64,000 bases of DNA from Macrostomum lignano (Eukaryota): assembly GCA_002269645.1 (NCBI GenBank), contig NIVC01002987.1, positions 13,686-77,685 on the forward strand. The letters are read 5' to 3'. The translations under genes were made by a program, and so were the position numbers. The notes under the pieces are model-generated. The model had not been told where the DNA came from. It was given only the letters and a program-made list of their open reading frames with translations, and searched no databases. Below, piece by piece: positions 2,979 through 45,420 of the stretch. The stretch's first letter is position 1. Every line of letters begins with the position of its first letter.

Positions 2979-3548
2979 ATGTCGACTGCAGAATTTGCTC
3001 CAGGCCGCGGTCAGGCCGTGAATGGGCCGCACGGGCCCGGCTGCTGTGCCGACTATCTGGACGGCATGCTGGCCACGGACCCTGTCAGCCGGTACTACAC
3101 CCGCTACGAGACCGCCGATGGTCACGTGACAGTGCTGGTCCACTCCAACCGGCTGCTGGTGCTCTGCCTGGGACTGAAGCACCCGGTTGTGACGGCCGGG
3201 CCAGCAGGCCTAACAGCAGTCGATTTCGGCCAGCGCGCCGATTCTCGGGTCAGCGGTAAACGGAAACGTGGCGGCCAGTTTCTGCGGCAGGGCGGGCAGG
3301 TGTGCGAGCTCCGGTTGTCCGGCTCGGCGCATCAGCCAGTCCGCTGTCCGGTTAGCGGCAAACTGATCGAAGTCAATCCGCGATTGGCTGCTGAGCCTAG
3401 CCTGGCTGTGACTGAGCCAGTCGGCCAGGGCTACCTATGCATCCTGGCGCCTTCGCTGTCCGATTGGCCTAAACTACTGGAGCCGCTGGTTCGCTGCTCG
3501 CCAGCTGCAGCAGAGCAATCAGTGACAGCTGAAGTCGTGGACAGCTGA
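2979..3548 (+). CDS. ABITRAM: Abitram (FAM206A/Simiate) homologue, single exon, 189 aa
   Basis: Family motifs recognised: VLVHSNRLLVLCLGLKHP, VSGKRKRGGQFL, VRCPVSGKLIEVNPRL (glycine-cleavage-H-like fold). Confidence 0.85.
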   Translation: MSTAEFAPGRGQAVNGPHGPGCCADYLDGMLATDPVSRYYTRYETADGHVTVLVHSNRLLVLCLGLKHPVVTAGPAGLTAVDFGQRADSRVSGKRKRGGQFLRQGGQVCELRLSGSAHQPVRCPVSGKLIEVNPRLAAEPSLAVTEPVGQGYLCILAPSLSDWPKLLEPLVRCSPAAAEQSVTAEVVDS

Positions 3549-9732: not shown

Positions 9733-10863
9733 TCAGAACTTGATTGACACGTCTTTCTGGCGTTGCATTTCAGCCGACTCCACTGCAGCCGGTAGTCCGT
9801 GGTTCGAGCCCCCCTCCCGTTCGGAAGCCTCGCCGTCGAGCAGGCCGGTCCTGGCCAGCTCCAGGGCGGAGCAGCGGGGAAAGCCGGGCACGGTCACCGT
9901 GTCGTGGAAGCCCTCGTAGTCGATGACGCATTCGCCTGTGTCCGTTGGCAAGATGCTGAGGTCCTCGAAGCGGTGTCCCCAGCGGATCTCCGTTGGCAGG
10001 TAGCTGGTCCGGGCCTCCGTGGTGGCGCCCGTCGAGATCACGACGCCGTTCATGAAGACCAGCAGCTCAAAGTCGGCCGAGTAGAGGTCCTTGGCGGACA
10101 TGTTCCAAAATGGCGAGCCGCTGTCAATTCTGTGCTGGACAACTACCGGCCAGCCGAGGAAGAGGCGGGCATCGCCGCCGTCCAGGCCCATGTTGATGAC
10201 CTGCTGCTCCAGTAAGAGCGTCTCGCCTTCAGCGGTGAGTCGCCGCTTCACCAGGACGCCGCGCACGCTGCAGTCGATGAGGTGAGAATGGCGAGCGTCG
10301 CCAACGCGGCAGAGCAGCACGAGATGCCCGTCGCGGCTGCAGATTGCCGCATTTTTGCTGAACAGCAGCGTGCCTGTCCGGTTCTTCGACTTCGTCAGCT
10401 TGGCCAGCACCGCGCCAGTCATCAGCGTCGTGATGATGAGGTTGCCGTAGGACTGCAGCGTCACCAGCAGCACCGCAATCGGGCACTTGTCCGACGGCGA
10501 CCGCGACCCGTAGCCGATGGTGATCTGCGTCTCCATGGAGAACAGCAGCGTGGCCAGGAAGGAGTTCACGTTGAGTAGGCAGGGCTCGAACCCCGGCGGC
10601 GGGGTGGTCAGGTAGTCTCCATGGCCGTAGCTGAGCGCCCACCAGAAGAAGGTGAAGAGCAGCCAGCAGCTGAAGAAGGCGGAGAAGAACACGGCTAGGC
10701 AGTAGCGCCACTTCATGTCCACCAGGGTGGTGAAGATGTCGCCAAAGTAGCGGCGCTTCCGCTTCCGCACGTTGCTATGGACGACGTTGCACTTGCCGTT
10801 CTTCATCACCAGCCTGTCGTAGCCTCGCATGCGCATGATGGCGAACTGCGACTCGCGGCGCAT
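9733..10863 (-). CDS. Inward-rectifier potassium channel (Kir/KCNJ family), 376 aa
   Basis: GKCNVVH N-terminus, FTTLVDMKWR, selectivity filter ETQITIGYG, conserved pore cysteines, LLFSKNAAI, ARTSYLPTEIRWGHRF. The frame stays open a little upstream, so a short N-terminal extension is possible. Confidence 0.95.
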   Translation of the reverse strand: MRRESQFAIMRMRGYDRLVMKNGKCNVVHSNVRKRKRRYFGDIFTTLVDMKWRYCLAVFFSAFFSCWLLFTFFWWALSYGHGDYLTTPPPGFEPCLLNVNSFLATLLFSMETQITIGYGSRSPSDKCPIAVLLVTLQSYGNLIITTLMTGAVLAKLTKSKNRTGTLLFSKNAAICSRDGHLVLLCRVGDARHSHLIDCSVRGVLVKRRLTAEGETLLLEQQVINMGLDGGDARLFLGWPVVVQHRIDSGSPFWNMSAKDLYSADFELLVFMNGVVISTGATTEARTSYLPTEIRWGHRFEDLSILPTDTGECVIDYEGFHDTVTVPGFPRCSALELARTGLLDGEASEREGGSNHGLPAAVESAEMQRQKDVSIKF

Positions 10864-11592: not shown

Positions 11593-14500
11593 ATGCCAAG
11601 ACCAATAGCAGTCTCAGCAAAAACACCCGAAATCCTGCCGTCGTCGGTTCATTCGCTAGCGTTGGCCATCTCGTTGCCGACGCTGGGCCTGGTGGCGCTG
11701 TGCGCTCTGGGCTGCGTCTGCTGCTGGCGGAGGAAGCGCAAGACCCGAGCTCGCCTGTTTGACCGGCTGGGCGAGGAGGCCAAGAGTGCAAGAACGACAG
11801 TCAGGTGACTTTTGCTGGTGGAGTGGGTAGACTGATACAGGGACATTGCTAGTGGTTTGATTAACGGTACCTAAAACAAGGTGGAAGGCTCTACTGAAGG
11901 AGGACACTTAAGCGTTTACAGATATATGGATAGATAGACAGATAGATAGACAGACAGATAGATAGACCGATAGATAGACCGCTAATCCAGACCGAACCCT
12001 CAAACCGCAATGCAGGAAACTGACTCATAAGGCAAACCGAGCGGGCAGGCGGCTGGCCGCACCGAAGGCAGCGTCAGCTCCGAAGCTGATGCGGATGGTC
12101 TCAACAGTGCTGCAGCAGCTGCCGTCTGAGCAGCGCAGGCAGAAGTCTAAGCAGCATCGATCAGCGCGGAGGCCTTCATACATGTGCTGGCAGGATGCGG
12201 AGCGGAGGAAGGATGAGCAGAAAGCGCCAGAGCAGCTGCCACATACAGACAGCTGGGTGAAGCGATCTGCGACGAGCGATGCTATTGAAGGCAAGAATGC
12301 AAGGCTGCAGTGTAAAGTATAGCTAGCTGCAGTCTGCTGCAGGACTTGGATTCACAAAAATACTTAAAATCATCTGATTCCGATAGACCGAAAAATTCGA
12401 CTTAAATAAGGATCCGACCACGCTTTGAAAAGGAAACGAATTATATTAGACTCCAATGACTGTTAGACAAGTATTTGCTCAAGACTACAAAGCCAGCTAA
12501 AAATAGATTTACCAGTAATGAATAAGATAGGGTTGAGACTACAATGAATAGAGCGTGCCAGGCTATACCTCAGGCGCAGAGAGCAGAGAGCTAGGGCGCA
12601 GAGAGCTAGGCGGAGGGTTTACAACTGGCCAAATCCAAGATGTGCTCACTTTTCCCGGATTTATATCCCTCAAATGCTGCATCATCTCAGGTTTTTTGCT
12701 TCTCAAACTTGCCAGCAAGGTACGCTTGTCAGCGTAGACCACTGTAGTTTGGGTTGGTCAAGATTTCTCTCTCAGAGACTTTCCCAGTCATTGGGGTGTG
12801 TTTCCAGACTCTCCCAGTCATTGGGGTGTGTTTCCAGACTCTCCCAGTCATTGGGGTGTGTTTCCAGACTCTCCCAGTCATTGGAGTGTGTTTCCAGACT
12901 CTCCCAGTCATTGGAGTGTGTTTCCAGACTCTCCCAGTCATTGGAGTGTGTTTCCAGACTCTCCCAGTCATTGGGTGTGTTTCCAGACTCTCCCAGTCAT
13001 TGGGGTGTGTTTCCAGACTCTCCCAGTCATTGGAGTGTGTTTCCAGACTCTCCCAGTCATTGGAGTGTGTTTCCAGACTCTCCCAGTCATTGGAGTGTGT
13101 TTCCAGACTCTCCCAGTCATTGGGTGTGTTTCCAGACTCTCCCAGTCATTGGAGTGTGTTTCCAGACTCTCCCAGTCATTGGAGTGTGTTTCCAGACTCT
13201 CCCAGTCATTGGGGTGTGTTTCCAGACTCTCCCTGCATTCATTGGTGTAGTTCCAGACTCTCCCTGCATTCATTGGTGTAGTTCCAGACTCTCCCTGCAT
13301 TCATTGGTGTAGTTCCAGACTCTCCCTGCATTCATTGGTGTAGTGCCAGACTCTCCCTGCATTCATTGGTGTAGTTCCAGACTCTCCCTGCATTCATTGG
13401 TGTAGTGCCAGACTCTCCCTGCATTCATTGGTGTAGTGCCAGACTCTCCCTGCATTCATTGGTGTAGTGCCAGACTCTCCCTGCATTCATTGGTGTAGTT
13501 CCAGACTCTCCCTGCATTCATTGGTGTAGTGCCAGACTCTCCCTGCATTCATTGGTGTAGTGCCAGACTCTCCCTGCATTCATTGGTGTAGTTCCAGACT
13601 CTCCCTGCATTCATTGGTGTAGTTCCAGACTCTCCCTGCATTCATTGGTGTAGTGCCAGACTCTCCCTGCATTCATTGGTGTAGTTCCAGACTCTCCCTG
13701 CATTCATTGGTGTAGTTCCAGACTCTCCCTGCATTCATTGGTGTAGTTCCAGACTCTCCCTGCATTCATTGGTGTAGTTCCAGACTCTCCCTGCATTCAT
13801 TGGTGTAGTTCCAGACTCTCCCTGCATTCATTGGTGTAGTGCCAGGCTCTCCCTGCATTCATTGGTGTAGTTCCAGACTCTCCCTGCATTCATTGGTGTA
13901 GTGCCAGGCTCTCCCTGCATTCATTGGTGTAGTTCCAGACTCTCCCTGCATTCATTGGTGTAGTTCCAGACTCTCCCTGCATTCATTGGTGTAGTTCCAG
14001 ACTCTCCCAGTCATTGGGGTGTTGCCAAACTTTCCCAGTCATTGGTGTATTACCAGACTCTTCCAGTCATTGGGGTGTTGCCAAACTTTCCCAGTCATTG
14101 GTGTATTACCAGACTCTTCCAGTCATTGGGTTGTGTTTCCAGACTCTCCCAGTCATTGGGGTGTATTACCAGACTCTCCCAGTCATTGGGGTGTGTTTCC
14201 AGACTCTCCCAGTCATTGGGGTGTTTCCAGACTCTCCCAGTCATTGGGGTGTATTACCAGACTCTCCCAGTCATTGGGTTATGTTTCCAGACTCTCCCAG
14301 TCATTGGGGTGTTTCCAGACTCTCCCAGTCATTGGGGTGTATTACCAGACTCTCCCAGTCATTGGGTTATGTTTCCAGACTCTCCCAGTCATTGGGGTGT
14401 TTCCAGACTCTCCCAGTCATTGGGGTGTTTCCAGACTCTCCCAGTCATTGGGGTGTATTACCAGACTCTCCCAGTCATTGGGTTATGTTTCCAGACTCTC

Positions 14501-15333
14501 CCAGTCATTGGGGTGTATTACCAGACTCTCCCAGTCATTGGGGTGTGTTTCCAGACTCTCCCAGTCATTGGTGTATTACCAGACTCTCCCAGTCATTGGG
14601 TTGTGTTTCCAGACTCTCCCAGTCATTGGGTTGTTGCCACTCACTCCCCATCCCAGTCATAGTGATATGACCGTCCGCCCCTACTCTTTGCTCCCTTCCC
14701 ACAGGCACGGATGCGGGCCTAGGCCAAATCCAGCTGGGCATACGGTACGACAGACGGCACCGGTTCCTGACTGTGGCGCTGCTGCAAGCGGCAAATCTGC
14801 AGCTGCCTCCAAACCAAAAGCCGCCGCAGCAGGTTCAAGCGCTGTTGCAGATCCTACCGCCGCAAGGTAGCCGCCACCAAGAGTTCAACGACACCTTCCA
14901 GACTCCGCCAGCTGAGTTCAATTCAGGTCAACCCAACTGGCGATACGCGTTCAAATTTGTGCAGTTCCCGGGCCTGCTAGCCAGCTGGCAGCTGCGGGTG
15001 GCGGTGCGGCTGGCAGCGGAAGATCAGGAAGACGGGACGCCGCGCTCACTTGTCCAGCAGCCGGCGCACCTCGGCGAGACTTGGCTCGATTTGGCAAAGT
15101 TTTCGCGACTGTCAGAGTCGTCATCAACTTCAACGCAAAACTCGTCGTCATCTTCGGCGACGGCGCCCGTCGAATCGCCGGCAAAGTGCGCAGACGATGG
15201 AGAGAAGCAGCGGCGACGGCAGCGACGGCAGCGGCGGCAGCGGAAGCTGCAACAGCAAGATGAAGCAGCAACTCTGGAGCAGGTGTTCTGGCAGCACCTG
15301 GAGCCTAGCAGGAGCTGCTGCGGTGGATTCTGA
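11593..15333 (+). CDS. Synaptotagmin-like gene: N-terminal TM helix, linker, one divergent C2 domain
   Basis: Exon 11593-11804 encodes a TM helix followed by CVCCWRRKRK, with donor ag|gtgact and an in-frame acceptor at 12015. A phase-1 donor at 12720 matches the acceptor at 14704. The last exon 14705-15333 encodes LGQIQLGIRYDRRHRFLTVALLQAANL...HLGETWLDL...VFWQHLEP (C2 fold). Linker exons are unresolved, and joining the TM exon to the C2 exon is inferred. Confidence 0.55.
12770..14640. repeat. Compound intronic minisatellite of three related 28-31-bp units
   Basis: cccagtcattggggtgtgtttccagactct, then ccctgcattcattggtgtagttccagactct, then variants of the first unit; shared core ttccagactctccc. 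Confidence 0.95.
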
Positions 15334-15812: not shown

Positions 15813-18800
15813 TCACGAATTTTTGGCTACGACTAAGTGCAGACTGCGCAGCATCTTCACTAGTTTGAAATCGTCATCGCTGAGCTGCGATGTGTCCACC
15901 TTGGCAACAGATGAGTTGTCCTTAGCAACTGGCGAGGCCTTAGCAACCGACGAGTCCTTAGCAACCGAAGAGTCCTTAGCAACCGACGAGTTTGTCTTAG
16001 CAATAGGCTTCTTTTCTTCAGTAGCTAACGTATTCTCCTTAGCAACCAACGAATTCTCCTGAGCTGGTCCCGTAGCAACCGGTGCCTCAATAACACTGGA
16101 ATTTTTATCTGGCGCTGGCAACTCGGCCCATACGCTGTCGTTCATAGGAGCGCATTCCAGAAACCGGGTCACTCGCTTCTTAGCATCCCCCTGCACAGCC
16201 GATTCGGGCCTGTACAGCCAGTAGAAACGGCACTGCAAGCTGGCCGACAGCTTGCGCACCGACGACAGGCAGCGGTGGAACTCGAAGAAGCCCAGGTCGT
16301 CGGGCGAGGGCGCAGACGGCGCCAGCAGCAGGTCAATCGGCAGGGCGGCACCGAGACGGTCGTCTGCCAGCAGTTCTACATCACCGAGATTGACAACTTG
16401 GCTGTCGTTGTTGATAGACGCTGTTGATTTTGCCGACAGACTAGAGGCCATCAGCAAAGTGGAGGTGAGCCCAGCTGCCTGCAGCAGCTTTAAGCTGAGC
16501 CCCTGCTGGTCGAACAGCACCAGGACGCGCAGCGGGCGAGTTGGGCTAGATTCGCGATCGAGCTGAGGTCTGAGGGGGTGTGGGTACACGGTGTGGCTGA
16601 GGCTTAAGCCCGTCGGTAACCAGTGGTCCGAACTGAAGTATCTGAGTTTGTCAACACTGATGGGGAATATTCCCACCTGAGGGATCAATACATCTACACG
16701 GATGGGAAAAATTCCCACCTGAGGGATCAATACATCTACACGGATGGGAAAAATTCCCACCTGAGGGATCAAGACATCTACACGGATGGGAAAAATTCCC
16801 ACCTGAGGGATCAAGACATCTACACGGATGGGAAAAATTCCCACCTGAGGGATCAATATATCAAGACTGATGGGGAATATTCCCACCTGAGGGATCAAGA
16901 CGTCAAGACTGATGGTGAATATTCCCACCTGAGGGATCAAGACGTCAAGACTGATGGTGAATATTCCCACCTGAGGGATCAAGACGTCAAGACTGATGGT
17001 GAATATTCCCACCTGAGGGATCAAGACGTCAAGACTGATGGTGAATATTCCCACCTGAGGGATCAATACATCTACACGGATGGGAAAAATTCCCACCTGA
17101 GGGATCAATATGTCAAGACTGATGGGGAATATTCCCACCTGAGGGATCAGTGTATCAACACGGATGGTGAATATTCCCACCTGAGGGATCAATATTTCAA
17201 GACTGATGGGGAATATTCCCACCTGAGGGATCAATATGTCAATACTGATGGGGAATATTCCCACCTGAGGAATCAATATCAACACGGATGGGAAATATTC
17301 CCACCTGAGAGATCAGTGTGTCAGGACTGATGGGGAACATTCCCACCTGAGGAATCAATACGTCAATACTAAATAGGATTGGGGGGATCATAACTGAATG
17401 ACGTCAGTAGCCTGGCCTGTCAGGACGCAGGCAATAACAAAACTGTTACTAAACACAGTGCAAAACAAATCTGATCTGTCCTTACCGACCAGCGGGTCGC
17501 AGCAGGCCCATCGGAGCGGACATGCACAGACAGCAAATCCAGTCAGTAGCGTCAGGCTCCAAGTAGGTGGCCAGGGCCCAGGCGGCCGGGCCGACAAGAA
17601 GGGTGAGACAGGCCTGCGGGAACACGGATACGGCTGATGACAGTCATCGGGATGTGGACAAGATCAGATAGGATGCAGACAAGATCAGAGAGGATGCGGA
17701 CAGGATCAGAGCGGATGCAGACAAGATCAGAGAGGATGCAGACAAGATCAGAGAGGATGCAGACAAGATCAGAGAGGATGCAGACAAGATCAGAGAGGAT
17801 GCAGACAAGATCAGAGAGGATGCGGACAAGATCAGAGAGGATGCGGACAAGATCAGATAATGTAGGCAAGATCTGAGAGGATGCGGACAAGATCAGAGAG
17901 GATGCAGACAAGATCAGAGAGGATGCGGACAGGATCAGAGTGGATGCGGACAAGATCAGAGAGGATGCGGACAGGATCAGAGTGGATGCGGACAAGATCA
18001 GAGAGGATGCGGACAAGATCAGAGAGGATGCGGACAAGATCAGAGAGGATGCAGACAAGATCAGATAGGATACGGACAAGATCAGAGTGGATGCGGACAA
18101 GATCAGAGAGGATGCGGACAGGATCAGAGTGGATGCGGACAAGATCAGAGAGGATACGGACAAGATCAGAGCGGATGCGGACAAGATCAGAGCGGATGCG
18201 GACAAGATCAGAGAGGATGCGGACAAGATCAGAGAGGATGCGGACAAGATCAGATAATGTAGGCAAGATCTGAGAGGATGCGGACAAGATCAGAGAGGAT
18301 GCAGACAAGATCAGAGAGGATGCGGACAGGATCAGAGTGGATGCGGACAGGATCAGAGAGGATGCGGACAGGATCAGAGTGGATGCGGACAGGATCAGAG
18401 TGGATGCGGACAGGATCAGAGTGGATGCGGACAAGATCAGAGAGGATGCGGACAAGGTCAGAGAGGATGCGGACAAGATCAGATAATGTAGGCAAGATCT
18501 GAGAGGATGCGGACAAGATCAGAGAGGATGCGGACAAGATCTGAGAGGATGCGGACAAGATCAGAGAGGATGCAGACAAGATCAGAGAGGATGCGGACAA
18601 GATCAGAGAGGATGCGGACAGGATCAGAGAGGATGCGGACAGGATCAGAGCGGATGCGGACAGGATCAGAGAGGATGCAGACAAGATCAGAGAGGATGCA
18701 GACAAGATCAGAGAGGATGCAGACAAGATCAGAGAGGATGCGGACAAGATCAGAGAGGATGCGGACAAGATCAGAGAGGATGCGGACAAGATCAGAGAGG

Positions 18801-20723
18801 ATGCGGACAAGATCAGAGGATTGCGGATGAAGCCATGAAGCCGGTAATACCTGGCAGAACAGTCGTTTGCAGCCTGTGCAAGTGGCCGCCTGCACGCCGC
18901 AGCGCATCGCGCACACAGAGCAGGCGCGGGCGCCCACGCCGATGACGGCAGCGGCAAGGGCGTCATTGACCCGGCGGCTGCAGGGCTGACACAGCTGGCC
19001 AGCGAATACGGGATGCTGGATAGCCGGGTCGCTGGCCGCCGAGCCGCCGCAGGCCAGACAGTAGTCAGGCTCGTTGATCCGGCTGCGCCTGTAGTTCCGC
19101 ATCAGCTGGTCTGTGATAGGACGCGAACCCGGTACCTCCAGGCAATCGTTATCGTGGCTACCGCCGCTGCTACTGCCACTGGGACCTCCGCTTCTGTCTT
19201 CTCCCTCTCTCTTCTCCTTTGTTCCGACAGCTTGGTTAGGCTTTTTGCAGCCCCGTCCCACTGTTGAAGCGGCGGTCGCGCTCTGCTCAAAGTCGGAGTC
19301 GCTGTCGACCGCGGCGGCGGCTGATGTGACTGGACGACTCTGTGCAGCTGGGATGAGATGGTGCATCGAAGCATTTCATTGCGCAGTGCGTGGCGTTACC
19401 TTCAAGACCACAGCATCAAACAGGACCCAGGGTCTTGCGCTATGGACAACCAAGGCAGAAGGACGCTGCACTGAAGCCAGCAGGTGTCCGAGCTGCGCTC
19501 ACAAGTTTATCAAGCTGTTTTTTTTAACTGCTGCCGGAGACCGGCAAGCAAGCAAAGTTGCGGCGAAATTGCAGCTGCTCCTGTCTCTGCAGTGTTTTGT
19601 CTGGACGGATTTGTCTTTGGTAAAAACCTGCTTAGTTTTATGTATGTAAAAAACCAAATCTCTGCAGTCGTTTAGAAAAGCTCTCCAATGATTTTTTAAA
19701 CTTTTTTCTCTTGAAAAAACTTGTGAGCGCACCTCGGAGAAAACACCTGCTGGCTTCATCTGCAATTCGGAAGTCCAGCAGGTGAGGTATTGGGAATTCA
19801 GTGCAGAAAAACTGAAAACTTCTTATCTCGCCAATGCATTCATATTCATACATGCGCAACTGCTGGCCAACCTGGCCGATCCGGCCACCGTAAATTGTGG
19901 TGGACCAGGTGGACCAAGTCGCATTTTTAATAAAAAAAGTAAGTCGTATGGCCAGTGTAAATCAGGGGGGGGTTGCGCATGTATGTTTATATAGATTTCT
20001 TTTTTATTATTTAATATTATTGATGGGTGTTAAAATTCTTTTCTTGTTTTAGAAGTAGACCATATCTGTAGACGAACATGGATTTCTTAAGACAGCAGCT
20101 AAACACTGACCAGGCGCGCCGCTTCTAACGTAGGAACGCCGGTGCCGCTCGCGCATGCTGTCCAGGCAGCGCTCGGCCCACTCGGACAGCCGACAACCGT
20201 CGCCGCCGTTCAACAGCGCCTGCTGGCCGGCCTCCAGCTCGGCTAGCGACTCTCGTAGCCGGCCAAGCGCAACCCGGCTGGTCAGGGAGCCGCGCGCCAA
20301 CAGCTCGTCTAGCAGGCGGACTAGGCCGCGTTGCTGCATCGAGCCGCTAGCGGGGGCGCCAGCACCAGCCGCAGGCAGATGGACCAGGGCTTTCTGGCTG
20401 CTCAGTGGCAGCAGGGATTTCTGAGCAACTTCGGACACTTTGCCTTCGGCTAGCCAAAGCAGCCAGCGCCAGCCTGGCCGAGCCGGGCGAAGGTGGCAGC
20501 GCCAGCCGGACACAACCATGCCGGGATAATGGCGCGCACCCCATGGCGCCCAGGCCAGAGCGCCGAAGTCTTCAACTAGCTCGCCCGACTGGGGGGCCAG
20601 CATGTTGTCAGCGGAGCTGACGGCGTTGCCCGATTCGTTGTCGGATGCGGATGAAGAGTCAGACGACTCATTGTAGTTGTTGCTGACAGGCCTGGGTCGC
20701 TTGGTTGCGCCGCGGGAGGGCAT
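15813..20723 (-). CDS. DNMT3-family protein: PWWP + ADD + catalytically degenerate methyltransferase-like domain, ~688 aa
   Basis: Exons 20723-20111, 19347-18851, 17613-17486 and 16641-15813 have GT/AG boundaries with matching phases (1, 0, 2) and total 2067 nt in one ORF. PWWP: WAPWGARHYPG, RWLLWLAEGK. ADD: CLACG..HPVFAGQLCQPC..CSVC..CTGCKRLFCQACLTLLVGP..WICCLC..GLLR. MTase-like: PLRVLVLFD, GDV, IDLLL, FFEFHRCL, FYWLY, VTRFLE. Confidence 0.9.
16645..17350. repeat. Intronic minisatellite, 42-bp unit
   Basis: gatcaagacgtcaagactgatggtgaatattcccacctgagg repeats filling intron 3 of the DNMT3-like gene. Confidence 0.95.
17655..18830. repeat. Intronic minisatellite, 21-bp unit
   Basis: gatcagagaggatgcggacaa repeats filling intron 2 of the DNMT3-like gene. 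Confidence 0.95.
19470..19762. mobile_element. MITE-like element, ~290 bp, in intron 1 of the DNMT3-like gene
   Basis: ~55-bp imperfect inverted ends (tgaagccagcaggtgtccgagctgcgctcacaagttt vs aaacttgtgagcgcacctcggagaaaacacctgctggcttca). Confidence 0.65.
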
Positions 20724-26200: not shown

Positions 26201-26302
26201 GCGCATACGCAGAGCCGGTAGACCTGCCCTGTTTTCCTGGTCTGGTCCGCCAGATACTTACCCATCCAGCCAGTGCCTGCCAATCCCCTATCTCGCTTTA
26301 CA

Positions 26303-29300
26303 ATGAGCATCCTGTGCCCATGCGCAGCCTCCAGCAGTGGTGCCTCATCTGGCGCCGAGGCCAAGTACTCGGTCGGCCGGGGCAACAAGCTGTCAGCCGA
26401 GCAGGTCAGTCGTCAAATCGATCGACAGTTGAAAGCCGACCGGGAGCTTCGACGCCACGAACGCCGCATCCTGTTGCTAGGCACTGCAGCTAGCGGTAAA
26501 AGTACATTTCTGAGATCGATGCGTATTATACACGAGGATCGATTCTCTGAGCAGGAGCTGCTCAGCTTCAAGTCAGTTATCTATTGCAATATTTGGCGCG
26601 GCCTGATGAAATTGCTGTACGTTAAAAAACGGCTTGGCATTCGCTGGGAGAATAATAAAACTGGCGTACCGGCTGTTAAAGCGCTGCTGGCTCTGGAGAA
26701 GGAAATTGGCCACTCGGCGCTCATGGCCTGCGGCCTGCGCGAGGATCAGTTCCTCAGGGCAGCGCCTTTTATTCAGGTATTTCTGTTTGCATGCTCTCCT
26801 GTGATTATTATCCATTAGGTCATTAGGGTTTTGTTAGCTTTCCCATGATGATTGTCCATTAGGCCATTAGCATTTTTCTTGCTTTAATTCCCATGATGAT
26901 TATCCATTAGGTCATTAGCGGTTTTCTTGCTTTAATTCCTATGGTGATTATCCATTAGGTCATTGAGGTTTTCTTTCTTTAATTCCCATGATGGTTATTC
27001 ATTAGGTCATTAGCGGTTTCTTGCTTTCCCATGATGATTATCCATTAGGTCATTAGCAGTTTTCTTGCTTTAATTCCCATGATGGTTATTCATTAGGTCA
27101 TTAGCGGTTTTCTTGCTTTCCCATGATGATTATCCATTAGGTCATTAGCGGTTTTCTTGCTTTCCCATGATGATTATCCATTAGGTCATTAGCGGTTTTC
27201 TTGCTTTCCCATGATGATTAACCATTAGGTCATTAGCGGTTTTCTTGCTTTAATCCCTATGGTGATTATCCATTAGGTCATTAGCGGTTTTCTTGCTTTC
27301 CCATGATGATTAACCATTAGATCATTAGCGGCTTTCTTGCTTTAATTCCCATGATGATTAACCATTAGGTCATTAGCGGTTTTCTTGCTTTAATTCCCAT
27401 GATGATTAACCATTAGGTCGTTAGCGGTTTTCTTGCTTTAATTCCAATGATGATTATCCATTAGGTCATTAGCGGTTTTCTTGCTTTCCCATGATGATTA
27501 TCCATTAGGTCATTAGCGGTTTTCTTGCTTTCCCATGATGATTATCTATTAGGTCATTAGCGGTTTTCTTGCTTTCCCATGATGATTAACCATTAGGTCA
27601 TTAGCAGTTTTCTTGCTTTAATTCCCATGATGATTATGCATTAGGTCATTAGCGGTTTTCTTGCTTTCCCAAGAGGACTATCTATTTAGTCATAGGGTTT
27701 CGACTACTAAAATATGATTTGTCATTACCTGGGTTGGGAGGGCCAGTGTCCTATAGCTGTTTGTGAATTCCAATCCGATTGCCACATGTACAGGAAACTT
27801 TTACTAATGAAATGTTATTGGGAAACTGGCTGCTATCTGACAAGCGGCGCACTAATCGCTTTCCGTATTTGATAGGAATGAGTCAATCAGGCCAGCAGCA
27901 GTCAGTGTCTTATGGGCAAGCATTAGCCAGAATATTTCTGCGCAGCGTTACACTTGGGGATGGGGTGCAAGGGCGAATGGCCATCCTGCTTTCCCCTCTT
28001 TCTCTCTCCCCCCTCTCTCCCACAGAAACTTTCCTGCATTTCTGGTCGGTCGGTCGTACTTCAATTTTCAAACTTTTCCGGAGCTCCCTCTTGTTTTTCC
28101 TATTCGAATGATCCGCATATCAGGCTTGGCTTGGCATATCATTACAGATTCAAATAGGCGTATGTATCTATACAGGCCATGCTGGTCTGTCCGCAGTGGC
28201 TTTGCATTCTCCCTCTTCCCACTGCTTCCCCCATTTCACCTCTGCTGGGCTTGCTACCGACAGGCCCATCTACGTCTAGTGTAGCCCTGTTGTGTTGTAT
28301 TTAATGGCGGATTCTTGTCGCGCCCCCTGACTTGGCTGCTGTAGATAATAGCTTTGCCTTTTGCTATTTTTTTGTCTGCAAATGCAGTGTGTAGTAGTCC
28401 ATATATACTACTGACAGTACTGTTATTTATGCTTTTCAATGAGCAGAATGAGTTTCGTAAGATTTTAATTTTGTGTTGTCTCTCAAATGTGTGTGTCAGC
28501 TGGCTACTGTGTTGTCTGTCAAATGTGTGTCAGCTGGCTACTGTGTTGTCTGTCAAATGTGTCAGCTGGCTACTGTGTTGTCTGTCAAATGTGTGTCAGT
28601 TGGCTACTGTGTTGTCTGTCAAATGTGTGTCAGCTGGCTACTGTGTTGTCTGTCAAATGTGTGTCAGTTGGCTACTGTGTTGTCTGTCAAATGTGTCAGC
28701 TGGCTACTGTGCCATCTCTGCATCTTCGCATGATTGAACATTGCCATGAGCTGGGAAGCTTATCACACCACACGCACAGGTTTGAATAGAATTAAAATGC
28801 TGTTTTTCACCTGCCCAGGTGCTCTGGTGCGACGCCGGAGTTCGTGAAGCATTCGAGCGCCGGCACAGCGTACCCGGCGACGAGGAGTTCAAAGATGTCG
28901 GAGAGAATCTGGATTACTATTTGAATAGGCTCAAATCTATCTCGGTTGTTAACTACAGGCCAACTGACGCGCACATATTGCATAGCAGGCGGTTTACTGA
29001 CTCGGTAAGGCAGTTTGTCTGGCTGCGATCTGCGAACTCTTTGCTGCCTACTTGCAGTAGTTTTCAAGTGATTACTGAGAGTCAGCCCCAAGCCCTACTG
29101 AGAGTCAGCCCCAAGCCCTACTGAGAGTCAGCCCCAAACCCTACTGAGAGTCAGCCGCAAACCCACTGAGAGTCAGCCGCAAACCCTACTGAGAGTCAGC
29201 CGCAAACCCTACTGAGAGTCGGCCGCAAACCTACTGAGAGTCAGCCGCAAGCCCTACTGAGAGTCAGCCCCAAACCCTACTGAGAGTCAGCCCCAAACCC

Positions 29301-30098
29301 TACTGAGAGTCAGCCGCAAACCTACTGAGAGTCAGCCGCAAGCCCTACTGAGAGTCAGCCCCAAACCCTACTGAGAGTCAGCCCCAAACCTACTGAGAGT
29401 CAGCCCCAAACCCTACTGAGAGTCAGCCCCAAGCCCTACTGAGAGTCAGCCCCAAACCCTACTGAGAGTCAGCCGCAAACCCTACTGAGAGTCAGCCCCA
29501 AACCCTACTGAGAGTCAGCCGCAAACTCCACCCGCAGGTATTCGAAAAGTGCCTGCTATACGAGGGCGTGCCCCTGCGCATTATCGACATTGGCGGGCAC
29601 ACTAACGAGCGCCGGAAATGGTCGAAAACGTTGCGCATATTCCAGGGCGAGCTGCAGTCGGTTATCTACATAATCGCCTGTTCAACATTCAACGAAACCT
29701 ACACCAAAGCCAGCGGCGAGCTCATCAACAAGCTCGACGAGAGTTTCCTCTGTCTGCGCCACCTTCTAGACGTGAAATCGGAGCTGTTCACCCGCGACAT
29801 GAACCTGATCGTGTTCTTCAACAAAGACGACCTGTTCTCTTACAAGATCGCCAGCCTTCGTGTCGATTATTCAAAGTTCGATTCGACCTTTCCAGCTGAT
29901 CGATTCGATCCGTTGGATCTCGGCCAGGTGCGCGAGCATCTGATCAGACGCCTGACCACTGTTGTGCCGCCTAATCGGCAGTTGCGCAGGTACACTCACT
30001 TCACCACCTCGATTGATCTCAGCAATGTCAGACGGGTGTTCCGCGACATCCGGGACACTGTTATGCTCAACTTTCTCAGAGAGGCCCTGCCGGCTTAG
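26303..30098 (+). CDS. Divergent heterotrimeric G-protein alpha subunit, closest in style to G12/13, ~406 aa
   Basis: Exons 26303-26776, 28819-29004 and 29538-30098, all phase 0 with canonical GT/AG. Motifs ILLLGTAASGKSTFLRSMRIIH, LWCDAGVREAFERR, DIGGHTNERRKW, FFNKDD, HFTTSID; N-terminal Cys pair MSILCPC. Confidence 0.92.
26810..27670. repeat. Intronic minisatellite, ~40-44-bp unit
   Basis: ttcccatgatgattatccattaggtcattagcggttttcttgct repeats. Confidence 0.95.
28495..28710. repeat. Intronic minisatellite, ~30-bp unit
   Basis: gtcagctggctactgtgttgtctgtcaaatgt repeats. Confidence 0.9.
29073..29525. repeat. Intronic minisatellite, 22-23-bp unit
   Basis: ctactgagagtcagccccaaacc repeats running up to the acceptor at 29537. 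Confidence 0.95.
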
Positions 30099-30412: not shown

Positions 30413-31664
30413 ATAAATAAATTCAGGAGACTGACACAGGAGGCGCTAAAAGATCATTACCCGATCTACTAGCAAATGAAATAAGATTTTTTAAATAGCA
30501 CTCAGATGCGAACAGACAATCTGACGTGGTATAAGAGCACTGTAATATTGTTCTTGTAGATATCATTAAACGAAGGCACTGCTAGTTTATTATCGCAAAA
30601 ACTCTGCCTGGATAAGATGGCAACTTGATGCTAGTAAACACCTTTAGAAACCTTTAGAACCTATGTACATATGCATTAGTTTATTTACTTCCAATTAAAT
30701 TTTACGCGCTGATGAGAATTAATCTTTGCACATGCAAATTATACTACTGTCATTATAGTAGCCAAACGTATAGATACGAGAGTGACAGATCAAGTTATAT
30801 ATTGTGTTCCCGGCTGGATGTTTTAGGCATAGCAGAAATGCGTTTATTGATGAAAAGTCGCTTACTATTAATTAGTAGCTTTAACTGAATCCTTCCAAAA
30901 CGGGTTGCTATAGAAAAACAGCAATTTTATCATCGCTGCTTTCAAATGATTCATTTTATGAAATTATGAAGGTGAGGAAGTCGAGTTCAATGTCTTTTAG
31001 CCTACTAAGGTACCTAGTAGTATCTTTCGACTGCCTTAAATATTTAATCGTTTGTACGGGAGTCACAAACCATAGCTTCTGAGCATGAGCATTACAACAG
31101 CTGTTTAATGCCACTATCCTTATACTAATCAATACGAGAGCTGTCAGCTGTTGTGAATCAATAAATTATTTTATTTTGAGCAGGCTAACAATCCCTGGAT
31201 TTGTGATGCAATAAGATTTCTTACTCTAATGCTATTTTGTTATTTCCTATTCGATGGAGTACAGTTTTTGATTCACAAGATCATTCAGTTTGTAGTGGAC
31301 AATAAACTATATGTTATATATGTATGCTTATTATCGTATAGATAATAATACAGACTTTATCTATTACTGAGCCATTGAGTCCGAGTATTTGTCTTAACAC
31401 TTCCCCTTGGTGCTTCTTATAGATGTATATATATGTATGCATACTGCTGCCCTGTATTTGCATAGTTTGTTGAGCTAGTTTGTTCAATTCTATACTCTTA
31501 TTAGTAGCAGTTTGTCTGATTGTACAATCTTTTTATTTCGAGTCAGTTTGGCCTTGGTCTTTTCTACTCCTATACATATTTATAATTTGTACAATAAGGC
31601 GACCATATGCGCTCTACAGCCTTGTATATTGTATTTAAATTTGCTTTTCATGGCCTTATTTAGG

Positions 31665-32150
31665 TTTAGAGACGCCATCCAAGGTGTGGAAACCACTCGC
31701 TCAGCCAGATTTAGAGACGCCATCCAAGGTGTGGAAACCACTCACTCAGCCAGATTTAGAGACGCCATCCAAGGTGTGGAAACCACTCACTCAGCCAGGT
31801 TTAGAGATGCCATCCAAGGTGTGGAAACCACTCACTCAGCCAGATTTAGAGACGCCATCCAAGGTGTGGAAACCACTCACTCAGCCAGGTTTAGAGATGC
31901 CATCCAAGGTGTGGAAACCACTCACTCAGCCAGGTTTAGAGACGCCATCCAAGGTGTGGAAACCACTCACTCAGCCAGGTTTAGAGACGCCATCCAAGGT
32001 GTGGAAACCACTCACTCAGCCAGATTTAGAGATGCCATCCAAGGTGTGGAAACCACTCACTCAGCCAGATTTAGAGATGCCATCCAAGGTGTGGAAACCA
32101 CTCACTCAGCCAGGTTTAGAGACGCCATCCAAGGTGTGGAAGCCACTCTC
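31665..32150. repeat. Tandem repeat, 48-bp unit
   Basis: tttagagacgccatccaaggtgtggaaaccactcactcagccag(a/g) repeated about 10 times. Confidence 0.95.
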
Positions 32151-32959
32151 TGTTCAGCCGGCTTATGAGCTGTTTGTTAAAATCAACCTGCACAATTATT
32201 AAGCGTACCGGTATTTGAGTTGTTATGAGGTCGAGAGATGCATTATTGTAATTGTGATTTATATATTCTTCCAACTATATGTAATATTAGTTGTGAATAT
32301 TGGTATACAATATATTTTACTGATTCAGTAGACCCAAGAAAGCATTCGATTGTGTATGAAATCGCTGCGCATATCTTATCAGAGTTGACTTGGGCCAACA
32401 CAGGGCAGGCATTTGATGTGTGCTAAGCAACAATTTGAAACGAAATTTTCTACGATTTCAGTGTTTTGTTTGTCCCCAATGTACATAGGAGCGTTGCCGC
32501 TTTTTTGCTATTTAATTATTGTTTGCTAATTCGAATTATTTTATTTAATTCTTCCTATTTTATTGGCCTTGTGCCAGGTTGATTCAGTAATAATATACGC
32601 GAGTAAGTTGATGCTTCGCTGCGTTGTCTATTAAACACAAAATACATGTAGTAATTCTTTTTTAACCTTTTCTTTTAAGCTGGTTCAATCTGTAGAGCAG
32701 GGGTTCCCGACGGAGGCAGGGCAGCTCCGTCTCACTCTTGTGCCTACCTTCATTTGGGGCTTTTGTGCACACAAAGTTGGCCGCCGGGTTGCCGTGCGAT
32801 TCACCCACAAATCACACAGTGTACATGCCTGACGCCTGTGCCGCTGTACACCCTTTGTGAGCCTGCGTACAGTATTGGCACGCTTTTGTGTTCACTGCTC
32901 AGGAGCCTTACTCCGCTGCAGGAGGCTCCGTCGACGTCCATTTCGCTAACCCCTAGCGA

Positions 32960-33939: not shown

Positions 33940-36900
33940 TCAAGAAGTGTTTTCCTCGCGTTCTATAATCTCCATTAGATCGTCCCACAGTTCTTCTTCA
34001 GACGGTGCTGCTGCTACTGCTGCCGGTGGGAATGGCTCCTGTGTGAAAAAATCTTCCTCGAATGTTCGAGTTCTCCGAGCGTCCTTGCTTAGCAGCTCCG
34101 GACATTCCAATATCCCGACTGAGGAGGCGGCGCCAGCTGACATTGGCTGCACCAGAAACTGCTCTGGCTGCTGAGGATGAAGCTCGGGTTCTGCCGCAGT
34201 TGCAGCCCCACTATCAAAGATGTTGGGTCTTGAGTACACCTGCTGCTGCTGCTGATGGACCAGATTGATGGCCGGAGGTTGCACGCTTGGCCCCAGCCCA
34301 GCCTGAGGCTGGAGAACCGGCTGCCATTGGACCAGGTTGATAGCCGGGGGCTTCACGAGCTGAACAACCGGCTGCGTCTGCTGCCCAGATACGCCACTGG
34401 CGCCGGCTTGCTTGCGACGCGGTTCTGTAATTATTAATTATTTATTAATTACAGTTACAGGAGGGGGCCGTAGCCTTGTAGTATAGCGCGGCGCTCTAAT
34501 GTACCAGCGGCCCAGGCTCGATTCCAAGTTCAGTCGCATTAATTTAGGGAATCTCGGCTTGGCTCTGCTCGTGCAATTAACGCCCTTGAGGCCAACCCCC
34601 AAGGCACAGTGAAGTGTACATGCCTAACGATAAATAAAGTTAGGGCCGCTGTGGACTCCTGTGTGAGTGAGGATGGCGGAGGCCCAGTGTGAGAATGGCG
34701 GAGGCCCAGTGTGAGGATGGCGGAGGCCCAGTGTGAGGATGGCGGAGGCCCAGTGTAAGGATGGCAGAGGCCCAGTGTGAGGATGGCGGAGGCCCAGTGT
34801 AAGGATGGCAGAGGCCCAGTGTGAGGATGGCAGAGACCCAGTGTGAGGATGGCGGAGGCCCAGTGTAAGGATAGGCCCAGTGTGAGGATAGGCCCAGTGT
34901 GAGGATAGGCCCAGTGTGAGGATAGGCCCAGTGTGAGGATAGCAGAGTCTCAGTGTGAGGATGGCAGAGTCTCAGTGTGAGGATGGCGGAGGCCCAGTGT
35001 GACGATGGCGGAGGCCCAGTGTGAGGATGGCGGAGGCCCAGTGTAAGGATGGCAGAGTCTCAGTGTGAGGATGGCGGAGGCCCAGTGTGAGAATGGCGGA
35101 GGCCCAGTGTAAGGATGGCAGAGTCTCAGTGTAAGGATGGCGGAGGCCCAGTGTGAGGATGGCGGAGGCCCAGTGTGAGGATGGCGGAGGCCCAGTGTGA
35201 GGATGGCGAAAGCCCAGTGTGAGTACGGCGGAGGCTCAGTGTGAGTATGGCGGAGGCTCAGTGTGAGGATGGCGGAGGCTCAGTGTGAGGATGGCGGAGG
35301 CTCAGTGTGAGGATGGCGGAGGGCCAGTGTGAGGATGGCGGAGGCCCAGTGTGAGGATGACGGAGGCCCAGTGTGAGGATGGCGGAGGCCCAGTGTGAGG
35401 ATGACGGAGGCCCAGTGTGAGGATGACGGAGGCCCAGTGTGAGGATGGCGAAAGCCCAGTGTGAGTACGGCGGAGGCTCAGTGTGAGTATGGCGGAGGCT
35501 CAGTGTGAGGATGGCGGAGGCTCAGTGTGAGGATGGCGGAGGCTCAGTGTGAGGATGGCGGAGGGCCAGTGTGAGGATGGCGGAGGCCCAGTGTGAGGAT
35601 GACGGAGGCCCAGTGTGAGGATGGCGGAGGCCCAGTGTGAGGATGACGGAGGCCCAGTGTGAGGATGGCGGAGGCCCAGTGTGAGGATGCCGGAGGCCCA
35701 GTGTGAGGATGGCGGAGGCTCAGTGTGAGGATGGCGAAGGCCCAGTGTGAGGATGGCGCAGGCTCAGTGTGAGGATGGCGGAGGCCCAGTGTGAGGATGG
35801 CGGAGGCCCAGTGTGAGGATCTGAGAAAGTTTCCGAACAAACTGAGACATAGAGAAAGGGTTGGAATCAGGTTTCTCTTGTTTTCCTGCTAACACACGGA
35901 AGAGTTACCGCGATGCTCGAATGCAGAGGACGAGCTCGCACGGGGCAGACTGAGTTGAATTGGATTCTGCTGGCTATCGCAGCTGCCGCAGCCCCATCTG
36001 AAGCGGATTGGCTCGCTTTCTGCTGCTGGCTCACTTTGAGTTTCCATGGCAACAAAGAATCGGCAAGAGAAGCAATCCAAATTGCGGCTCTCAATGATGT
36101 CAATCAGTTCAGCCGGGATGCAACTTCCAACAGGTTCAATCTCCAGCAGGTGCTGAAATGATAAATATTGTACTCATTAACGATACGAGCTAAATAAAGC
36201 AACAGACATGCCAGACTGAAGAGAAGCTGTAAAAACTCGAACTCTCACCCCAGTGTGCCGTTTCACCGGGCAGTCAAACAGTCTGAAGTCGTCAATTTGA
36301 CAGGTGACCTTCAAATTTTTGCCGCCTAAAATATCGATTTTTATTTAATAGCGTTACTAATCTATAAAAAATTTATAGCGAAACTTTGTACTGCTCACCG
36401 CTTATCGCATCTCTCAGCAGGATGGCCAGATGGGTACTTCCAAATTTAGTACAGCAGGGCTCCGCCACAGCGGTCAGAATTTTCTCCACTGACACTCTCG
36501 GTGCTGAATTGGGGCGGGATTGGATGTGAGTGACAATGTGATTGCATGTGAGTGACAATGTGATTGCATGTGAGTGACAATGTGATTGCATGTGAGTGAC
36601 AATGTGATTGCATGTGAGTGACAATGTGATTGTATGTGAGTGACAATGTGATTGCATGTGAGTGACAATGTGATTGCATGTGAGTGACAATGTGATTGGA
36701 TGTGAGTGACAATGTGATTGGATGTGAGTGACAATGTGATTGGATGTGAGTGACAATGTGATTGCATGTGAGTGACAATGTGATTGGATGTGAGTGACAA
36801 AGTGATTGGATGTGAGTGACAAAGTGATTGGATGTGAGTGACAAAGTGATTGGATGTGAGTGACAAAGTGATTGGATGTGAGTGGCAAAGTGATTGGATG

Positions 36901-44539: not shown

Positions 44540-45420
44540 TTCAAGGCCAGGTCGCGAATAAACGCCACGCCGCCGGCCGAATCCGGGGCGCCGGCGTCAG
44601 CCAGCAGGCAGTCGACACGAAACGCCGAGTGCGCGCCTGCCCTGCCATAGATTGGCCCAGCAACTGGGGATCTGGGAGGCTGGTGGCCCAGCAACTGAGG
44701 ATCTGGGAGGCTGGTGGCCCAGCAACTGAGGATCTGGGGAGGCCAGGGTGGCCTGCAGCGTTAGCAGCAGCACCTCCTGCACCGGCTCTGGGCAGTACGA
44801 CTCAGCGCGGATGATGTGGCCTGCCAGCTGGATCGTCACCGACGGCGCAACAGGTCGCTTGGACGGACCAGGCCGGCGCGGCGATACAAAGCCGCGTTGC
44901 ATGTGGTCACTCGCTCGTAGACGATCTTGAAGGCGGCGCGCAGCAGGCCAGCGTGCGCCGCGTCAACTTGTTGCTCGAGTGACTCCGTCAGCGTCCAGGT
45001 CTCGGCGTTGTACAACAGGACGGTCTCGATCACCGCCTGGAACAGCGCCGCCCTCTGGCGGTCGGATAAGGCCTCGGACTGCAGGACTGCCCTCGCAGAA
45101 AGAAAGGCAGCCCAGGCAAGCCCGCAGCGACGCCGCAAATCCTCGCGGACGCCGGGAACCAGACCGCCGAGGTAGACGAACTGCTGACAACGTGGAAGCT
45201 CTGTCACCTGTCCATCAGCGCCTCGGCACAAAATCGATGTCGTCCGGCACGCAGAGCACAACAGTCCTTCTGCGTGTTGACCACCAGGCCGACACTCGCC
45301 GCAAAAGCAACTAGCTTGTCCAGTTGTCGCTGGGCGCCCTCGACAGGAGGACAGCAGGGCGAGTTCATCGGCGTAGCCAAGCACGCTGAGACGCCTCTCC
45401 GGTTGACGTCCAACCGGAGA
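44540..45420 (-). mobile_element. 5'-truncated, frameshifted RTE-clade LINE (reverse transcriptase C-terminal part)
   Basis: YADELALL (cf. YADD), QRQLDKL..SVGLVVNTQK, FVYLG, AWAAF, LFQAVIETVLLYNAETWTLT in shifting frames. Confidence 0.85.

Follow-up and report, generated by a model that had tools for sequence, protein, structure and literature searches.

An expressed, apparently catalytically dead DNMT3 paralogue with PWWP and ADD domains in the flatworm Macrostomum lignano

Introduction

In oligomers of DNMT3 enzymes, RD and FF interfaces alternate. DNMT3L and DNMT3B3, which lacks the target recognition domain (TRD), take the outer positions of such assemblies through the FF interface alone, DNMT3B3 capping DNMT3A/B dimers (PMC10711551). 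Among invertebrates, Daphnia magna DNMT3.1 keeps its PWWP domain and has lost five of six methyltransferase (MTase) motifs; it has been likened to DNMT3L, and its CRISPR knockout has a phenotype (PMC8016896). In the flatworm Macrostomum lignano, DNMT1, DNMT3 and low 5-methylcytosine (5mC) have been reported (PMC11292947, PMC9246332). Here we describe a further DNMT3-related gene of M. lignano. It lies on the minus strand at positions 20723-15813 of a 64,000-nucleotide stretch of DNA, called the window throughout (assembly GCA_002269645.1, contig NIVC01002987.1, positions 13,686 to 77,685 of the forward strand). A sequence-only reading of the window had proposed an inactive, DNMT3L-like partner or inhibitor of DNMT3. 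Our analysis indicates an old, functional duplicate of the flatworm DNMT3 that has apparently lost catalysis and has kept its PWWP domain, the ADD scaffold and the helices of the FF interface.

Results

The gene has an intact open reading frame (ORF) of 2067 nt in four exons (20723-20111, 19347-18851, 17613-17486 and 16641-15813), which are joined in a single frame across predicted GT-AG junctions and code for 688 residues in the order PWWP-ADD-MTase. Among the sequences of solved structures the closest relative of the protein is DNMT3A (E 2.4e-25), the similarity to DNMT3L reaching only 4e-10, and the match to DNMT3A falls into two stretches, the PWWP domain (aa 53-115) and the ADD domain with the N-terminal half of the MTase domain (aa 284-579). 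The intact four-exon frame and the DNMT3 domain order proposed from the sequence alone are thus borne out by the gene model and by the resemblance to DNMT3A. A second DNMT3 of the species, BOX15_Mlig034009g1 (P0002; 846 aa, 31% identity), served as the active paralogue for comparison. It carries PF00145 and both ADD models, its motifs FDG, GGSPCSQLS, ENV, RRARLFWGNLPG and GRSWCLPLV are intact, and by these marks it is an intact DNMT3.

Alignment to DNMT3 proteins recovered every motif loss that the sequence-only reading had listed (motifs I, IV, VI and VIII, and the TRD with motifs IX and X). In motif I (16503-16517) LFDG has become LFDQQ, and the glycine is gone; in motif II (16437-16448) ASE has become ASS, with loss of the glutamate. 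Motif IV (16290-16331) reads APSAPS in place of GGSPC(S/N) and is followed by a deletion of 8-14 residues, so that the PC dipeptide is missing. The ENV of motif VI (16197-16223) is replaced by RPE, and from motif VIII (16110-16136) RxR has been deleted, leaving W584..P588 as a remnant. Nothing similar to the TRD, motif IX or motif X was found in the window protein, which has a disordered repeat tail in their place; motif III (GDV) and some core residues persist in the MTase remnant. Because the catalytic and cofactor residues are lost, the protein is predicted to be catalytically inactive, neither binding S-adenosylmethionine nor methylating cytosine in the normal way.

The idea that the protein might still be an active methyltransferase, by way of alternative exons or unconventional chemistry, is effectively refuted. 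It has in its favour only membership of the DNMT3 superfamily, motif III and the surviving core residues. The catalytic Cys, ENV, RxR, the TRD and motifs IX and X are absent, the Gly of motif I and the Glu of motif II are lost, and a Pfam scan of the window protein gave no match to PF00145 even at E values up to 10. Hidden or alternative exons that might supply PC, ENV, motifs VIII-X or the TRD were sought across the whole 64 kb by low-stringency tblastn with the active paralogue, and only the four known exons matched; an exon restoring PC and ENV, which the earlier reading had named as able to overturn it, is therefore not found in the 64 kb. A convergent neighbouring gene lies about 400 bp past the stop codon.

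The structure of the protein was predicted with AlphaFold2, run on a 32-sequence alignment. The model has a PWWP barrel at aa 51-115 (20379..20573, minus strand; predicted local distance difference test (pLDDT) 90-96), which matches DNMT3A/3B PWWP structures with E values of 1e-5 to 4e-5, then a helical bundle (aa 127-200), a disordered linker and the ADD domain (aa 283-413, pLDDT about 80). A truncated, half-Rossmann core follows at aa 445-585 (16125..16547, minus strand; pLDDT 80-93), with strands beta1-beta6 and helices alphaA-alphaD. The best PDB matches of the model in Foldseek are the DNMT3A2/DNMT3B3 and DNMT3A/DNMT3L complexes. In Pfam, only ADD_DNMT3 (PF17980) passes, with 28.5 bits over aa 288-332.

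What the MTase remnant retains is concentrated in the pair of helices that make up the FF interface. The first, alphaC (GFFEFHRCL..., 16236..16292, minus strand), is predicted at aa 530-548, and the second, alphaD (KKRVTRFLECAP, 16146..16187, minus strand), at aa 565-573. When interface residues were mapped from PMC10711551, 12 of the 14 conserved columns were found to be kept in these helices, compared with 4 of the 18 columns for catalysis, cofactor and DNA loop (Fisher p ~0.001). FFEFHR is the same in the window gene and in the active paralogue, and both FF-interface phenylalanines, F532 and F573, are retained. The segments FFEFHR and RFLEC are present in the alignment, as the retention of the dimer interface claimed from the sequence alone implies. 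To judge from these residues, the window protein has the sequence prerequisites for binding through the FF interface.

The rest of exon 4 encodes a low-complexity tail, predicted to be disordered (aa 586-667), and a low-confidence C-terminal helix (aa 668-688; 15816..16124 for both, minus strand). In the AlphaFold2 model aa 585-665 are disordered, with pLDDT <50, and the terminal helix spans aa 668-687. The tail contains an 18-bp coding repeat in 4.1 copies (15918-15991, minus strand; Tandem Repeats Finder (TRF)) with units SSVAKD. The C-terminal helix was considered as a remnant of the motif-X helix, which DNMT3L keeps, and was rejected because a profile built from 14 DNMT3 C-termini did not score the actual tail at all.

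Of the two reader domains, the PWWP is divergent, SWWP being replaced by RHYP, and it is so to an equal degree in the active paralogue. Both Macrostomum proteins have Tyr at the position of the cage residue W306 and keep W330. Of 12 zinc ligands the ADD domain retains 11; at the position of human C549 it has Ala359, and Cys361 is close by. The loop AVIGVGA (18929..18949, minus strand) corresponds to Y528-Q534 of human DNMT3A, the DDD loop, and has lost the acidic residues that contact histone H3 unmethylated at lysine 4 (H3K4me0): human D529, D530 and D531 are V, I and G (G341) here. At the column of D531, Asp is found in at least 90% of 32 DNMT3 proteins and also in P0002. Both D529 and D531 are required for H3K4me0 binding and for autoinhibition (PMC10393158), and with their equivalents lost, canonical H3K4me0 reading by the window ADD is improbable. 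The proposal that PWWP and ADD are both kept holds for the PWWP and for the zinc scaffold of the ADD, and probably does not extend to H3K4me0 reading of the DNMT3L type.

We then placed the gene among its relatives. Among the matches listed from a search of 5.8 billion clusters, the only close protein was BOX15_Mlig004102g2 (P0001) of M. lignano, which equals the window protein over aa 1-361 except for one substitution and shares the start Met of window exon 1; P0002 was the next match. With the ADD and the dead domain as the query, P0001 was again the sole close relative among the matches listed. An exhaustive phmmer search against 1.84 billion representatives found no orthologue elsewhere, only the M. 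lignano copy P0001, and its other hits were ordinary DNMT3s of at most 38% identity (Lingula, Owenia, chelicerates, molluscs and vertebrates). No public protein spans the pseudo-MTase region, since the frame of P0001 is broken ahead of it. The active DNMT3 partner gene on which the earlier reading depended is present in the genome as P0002 and as P0005, another copy of P0002, both with PF00145 and all motifs intact.

A neighbour-joining tree of 32 DNMT3 proteins (286 ADD and MTase columns), which long-branch effects may have influenced, pairs the window gene with P0002 as sisters (93.5% bootstrap) and puts vertebrate DNMT3L elsewhere. The two Macrostomum paralogues have in common nine derived states at otherwise conserved PWWP positions and a phase-2 intron after the ADD (RLY|YQ in the active paralogue); the window gene has three introns and the active paralogue at least seven. 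Synonymous sites between them are saturated (pS 0.65-0.69), and the duplication is therefore old. An IRK gene lies near both DNMT3 loci, the two IRK paralogues being about 55% identical and differing in orientation. Strict synteny was rejected, since in addition to that difference the intervening genes show no similarity between the loci, and the arrangement is no more than suggestive of a block duplication. The tree position, the shared PWWP states and the IRK neighbours bear out the independent origin that the sequence-only reading had inferred; on the same tree, its label DNMT3L-like does not hold as family membership. The window gene is an old lineage-specific duplicate of the flatworm DNMT3, unrelated to vertebrate DNMT3L.

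Two side observations concern these relatives. The IRK gene next to the dead DNMT3 (9733-10863, minus strand) is a single intronless ORF with IRK and IRK_C domains, for which an exact-protein look-up returned no record, and the one next to the active DNMT3 (locus L002, 29037-33738) is split in at least three pieces; at the dead locus both the DNMT3 and the IRK gene are thus intron-poorer than their active-locus paralogues. As to DNMT3L itself, the earlier reading had called it an amniote innovation, which does not hold. The literature describes it as therian (PMC6976628), and shark proteins (P0105, P0147 and P0148, from Pristiophorus japonicus and Heptranchias perlo) are annotated 'DNA (cytosine-5)-methyltransferase 3-like' and have degenerate motifs, P0105 falling inside the vertebrate DNMT3A/B clade of our tree. 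DNMT3L-type genes may be older than their commonly cited therian origin.

Transcription, which the earlier reading had required, is documented in published data. In Supplementary Table 2 of Grudniewska et al. 2018 (PMC5816591), cluster MligTCv3c-10395.0 comprises Mlig004102.g1, g2 and g3, is labelled DNMT3A with an empty Pfam field, and is flagged TRANSSPLICED; an AG stands 9 nt upstream of the exon 1 ATG. The cluster is up in S/G2/M cells in intact, gonad-less and juvenile animals, with log fold changes (logFC) of about 1.5-2.0 that describe three copies together and not the window locus alone (intact animals, G1 to G2/M: logFC 2.0, false discovery rate (FDR) 1.6e-6), and it is down after irradiation (72 h: logFC -1.94, FDR 8.7e-25). 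It belongs to the 357 'Neoblast, stringent' clusters and stands outside the germline category (PMC5816591). The cluster represents trans-spliced transcripts that are enriched in neoblasts, the somatic stem cells that proliferate. No mention of the dead DNMT3 gene was found in the main text of PMC5816591 or in other literature, and the gene is not among the entries of the Wudarski 2017 supplements.

The open frame is difficult to attribute to chance. Between 3.1 and 3.5% of the possible point substitutions in the window coding sequence (CDS) create a stop codon, and in simulations that ignored indels the probability that the frame survived was 0.04 at 0.05 neutral substitutions per site and fell to 0.0015 at 0.1. 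Because divergence from the parent gene is far above 0.1 substitutions per site, the frame has not been kept through neutral decay. As the synonymous rate (dS) against the active paralogue is saturated, the ratio of nonsynonymous to synonymous rates (dN/dS) is unreliable, and we relied on the contrast between domains alone. At positions where outgroup DNMT3s show conservation, lineage-specific changes in the window protein and in P0002 numbered 1 versus 0 in the PWWP, 5 versus 4 in the ADD, 30 versus 3 in the MTase domain (chi2 22) and 15 versus 3 in the tail. Over aa 66-98 of the PWWP, 29 of 33 residues match the active paralogue (dN 0.08, dS >1.4), and 15 of 27 codons differ synonymously; these silent differences among identical residues rule out a recent gene conversion of the block. 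The pattern points to purifying selection on the PWWP, the ADD zinc scaffold, the core of the N-terminal Rossmann half and the FF helices.

P0001 maps to NIVC01000352.1 of assembly Mlig_3_7 (locus L001), where the neighbours (G-alpha, the DNMT3-like gene, an unknown gene and the IRK channel) are those of the window. By megablast the two loci are 92-97% identical, with gaps counted and minisatellite arrays included. Only 0.97% of aligned bases differ in unique non-coding sequence, so the copies are very recent: they are homeologues, recent duplicates or alleles of the neopolyploid M. lignano. Their CDSs differ by eight substitutions, five synonymous and three nonsynonymous, a nonsynonymous share below the neutral expectation of about 74% (p=0.03), and CDS divergence (0.39%) is below the non-coding figure (Fisher p=0.02). 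The three splice donors and three acceptors are the same in L001. The L001 tail has one 18-bp repeat unit more (~14450), and the repeat is thus a coding length polymorphism in the disordered tail. The L001 CDS also has a 1-bp deletion at 1063 and a 2-bp deletion at 1298-1299, which add up to 3 nt but break the frame over aa 355-433 and bring in an in-frame stop. Since indels are about as dense in the CDS (1.5 per kb) as in unique non-coding sequence (2.2 per kb), the two deletions may be long-read assembly errors. The public model BOX15_Mlig004102g2 (438 aa; L001 11374-11869 and 13801-14645) is a frame-shifted mis-model.

These comparisons bear on the view that the locus is a transcribed pseudogene in slow decay, with the open frame of the window copy as a leftover. 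Loss of all the catalytic motifs, the two frameshifts and stop of L001, the length-polymorphic repeat in the coding tail, the failure to find an orthologue elsewhere and the lack of any Pfam match for MTase or PWWP would all fit such a decay. We nevertheless consider it improbable: 688 codons have stayed open despite saturated synonymous sites (P <=0.0015 at 0.1 neutral substitutions per site, for substitutions only), the erosion is domain-selective and not uniform, the six intron boundaries are canonical and unchanged in L001, recent differences are short of nonsynonymous changes and sparser in the CDS than in non-coding sequence, expression is regulated and stem-cell specific, and the L001 indels may be assembly errors. 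The window copy shows no disruption of its frame or splice sites, nor does the locus display uniform neutral decay without regulated expression. ORF survival, domain-selective constraint, the pattern of the MTase remnant and expression lead us to conclude that this is a functional protein-coding gene, not a dead pseudogene.

Exon by exon, all on the minus strand, the gene is built as follows. Exon 1 (20111..20723, aa 1-204) starts with the ATG at 20723, encodes a basic and Ser-rich N-terminus, the PWWP barrel and the helical bundle, and ends in a phase-1 donor (CTG|gtcagt). Exon 2 (18851..19347, aa 205-370; acceptor cccag|CTG, donor CAG|gtatta) encodes the disordered linker, the GATA-like finger of the ADD and the first half of its PHD finger, of which exon 3 (17486..17613, aa 371-413; acceptor ccgcag|GCC, donor TCG|gtaagg) supplies the second. 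Exon 4 (15813..16641, aa 413-688 and the TGA; acceptor aactcag|ATA) encodes the degenerate MTase-like half-domain and the tail, and aligns with aa 509-708 of P0002 (E 4e-20). Introns 2 and 3 are minisatellite almost throughout (TRF): 56 copies of a 21-bp unit at 17650..18818, open in several frames, and 17 copies of a 42-bp unit at 16651..17370, open in the frame of exon 4. These open arrays give rise to the spurious long ORFs at the locus, that of intron 3 to a mechanical 490-aa ORF at 15813-17285.

Elsewhere in the window, the convergent neighbour has its last exon at 14773-15333 (plus strand), its 3' end about 400 bp from that of the DNMT3-like gene; the gene is annotated at L001 with 375 aa and without a Pfam domain, and in the window it has a weak sub-threshold SR-25 match. 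Exons of a G-protein alpha subunit lie at 26273-26818 and 29568-30098 (plus strand), a family-21 glycosyltransferase (ceramide glucosyltransferase-like) at 46758-47660 (plus strand) and a weak GCV_H-like ORF at 2979-3548 (plus strand). An ORF at 44836-45441 (minus strand) looks by eye like a reverse-transcriptase fragment and has no Pfam match. Minisatellites with units of 18-45 bp occur at 1173-1868, 12674-14870, 16651-17370, 17650-18818, 31512-32202, 36373-37483, 38104-38547 and 58188-58901, and many of them are open in two or three frames, giving long spurious ORFs.

Discussion

The reading that we favour, by a modest degree of confidence, is that the gene encodes an expressed, catalytically dead DNMT3 pseudoenzyme that acts in stem cells as a non-catalytic DNMT3 subunit or chromatin adaptor. 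The protein would dock on active DNMT3 through the FF interface and could form the outer, non-catalytic subunits of a dead-active-active-dead tetramer, as DNMT3L or DNMT3B3 do; since the RD interface and the TRD are absent, only such an outer, non-catalytic position would be open to it. From there it might contribute its own PWWP for targeting to chromatin and, in neoblasts, modulate, cap or stabilise de novo methylation. That neoblasts use a convergent, PWWP-bearing dead subunit of the DNMT3L/DNMT3B3 kind to control the site and strength of methylation by their single active DNMT3 is a more specific proposal, which we put forward only tentatively.

The main rival is a protein that never binds active DNMT3 and instead reads or scaffolds chromatin independently of methylation, using its PWWP and ADD (to repress transcription or to recruit other factors, for instance), with its MTase half left over as a structural remnant. 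We regard this as rather unlikely, though as a serious alternative. It would explain why the PWWP is the most constrained part of the protein (dN 0.08), why the ADD scaffold is constrained (5 versus 4 changes) and why the MTase half is strongly eroded and truncated, and it agrees with the low 5mC of M. lignano and with the catalysis-independent roles of DNMT3 proteins and the broad transcriptional phenotype of Daphnia DNMT3.1 that have been reported (PMC8016896). It would not lead one to expect that retention within the MTase remnant is concentrated in the FF helices (12/14), with FFEFHR unchanged, if partner binding were irrelevant; this argument is not decisive, as the retained residues also serve the core of the fold.

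Several findings weigh against a non-catalytic subunit or adaptor of the kind that we favour. The PWWP gives no Pfam match and has Tyr at the W306 cage position, which is true of the active paralogue too, and the acidic ADD loop is gone. The MTase-like domain, at about 140 residues, has neither beta7 nor the motif IX/X helices, which DNMT3L retains in part, and it may not fold autonomously. With no orthologue found, long-term conservation rests on the paralogue comparison only. The expression values are those of a cluster of three copies, and the published transcript g3, at 1832 nt, is shorter than the 2067-nt CDS. The frame break of L001, if real, means that loss of one copy is tolerated.

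Reviews credit M. lignano with just 'DNMT1 and DNMT3', a count of the methylation toolkit that changes with this gene; the sole public protein model is frame-shifted ahead of the dead domain, expression tables label the gene 'DNMT3A', and in the literature searched we found no description of a flatworm dead DNMT3 as such. The gene would be the third independent animal case of a dead DNMT3 partner and would support the notion that the oligomer architecture repeatedly favours such subunits: if true, an inert outer subunit of the DNMT3 dimer has been reached at least three times in animals, in vertebrates, crustaceans and flatworms. The case sits in a regeneration model that is transgenic and amenable to RNA interference, where a stem-cell-enriched chromatin factor is open to direct testing and the methylome is still uncharacterised.

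The kind of protein is known already from mammals and Daphnia, and no new principle is involved; the PWWP in an inactive DNMT3, to which the sequence-only reading had drawn attention, has precedents in D. magna DNMT3.1 (PMC8016896) and mammalian DNMT3B3 (PMC10711551), and the novelty was overstated there. DNMT3.1 resembles the flatworm gene in being an invertebrate, PWWP-bearing DNMT3 paralogue beside a motif-complete one (PMC8016896). It differs in keeping motif VI, which the flatworm gene has lost, in being starvation-regulated, whereas the flatworm gene is stem-cell enriched, and in having an active paralogue without a PWWP, which in Macrostomum has one. Because the window gene is sister to the active DNMT3 of Macrostomum (in an alignment from which the Daphnia sequence is absent), orthology to DNMT3.1 is unlikely, and the two are almost certainly independent events. 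A plant parallel with the same evolutionary logic is Arabidopsis DRM3, an inactive paralogue of DRM2 that is needed for full activity of the de novo methyltransferase; DRM3 differs in belonging to the plant DRM lineage, in which the motifs are rearranged and UBA domains are present, and the sequence kinship is only at the level of the MTase superfamily.

The mammalian proteins remain the closest comparison. DNMT3B3 (PDB 6PA7, 9E05) also keeps PWWP and ADD, has no folded TRD and has an intact FF interface (PMC10711551). It is, however, a splice isoform of an active gene, whereas the flatworm protein comes from a separate locus that has lost its motifs by mutation. Motifs I, IV and VI remain intact in DNMT3B3. 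Mammalian DNMT3L shares with the flatworm protein an ADD that precedes an MTase-like domain in which motifs I, IV and VI are dead and TRD and motif IX are missing, both FF phenylalanines, the absence of the RD interface, and expression in a stem or progenitor compartment. Unlike DNMT3L, to which it is not orthologous, the flatworm gene is a lineage-specific DNMT3 duplicate closer to DNMT3A (2e-25) than to DNMT3L (4e-10), and its product keeps a PWWP, lacks the Asp pair of the ADD, and has a shorter MTase remnant with a disordered repeat tail at its end. The flatworm protein seems to be a counterpart of DNMT3L and DNMT3B3 that evolved independently and belongs to neither.

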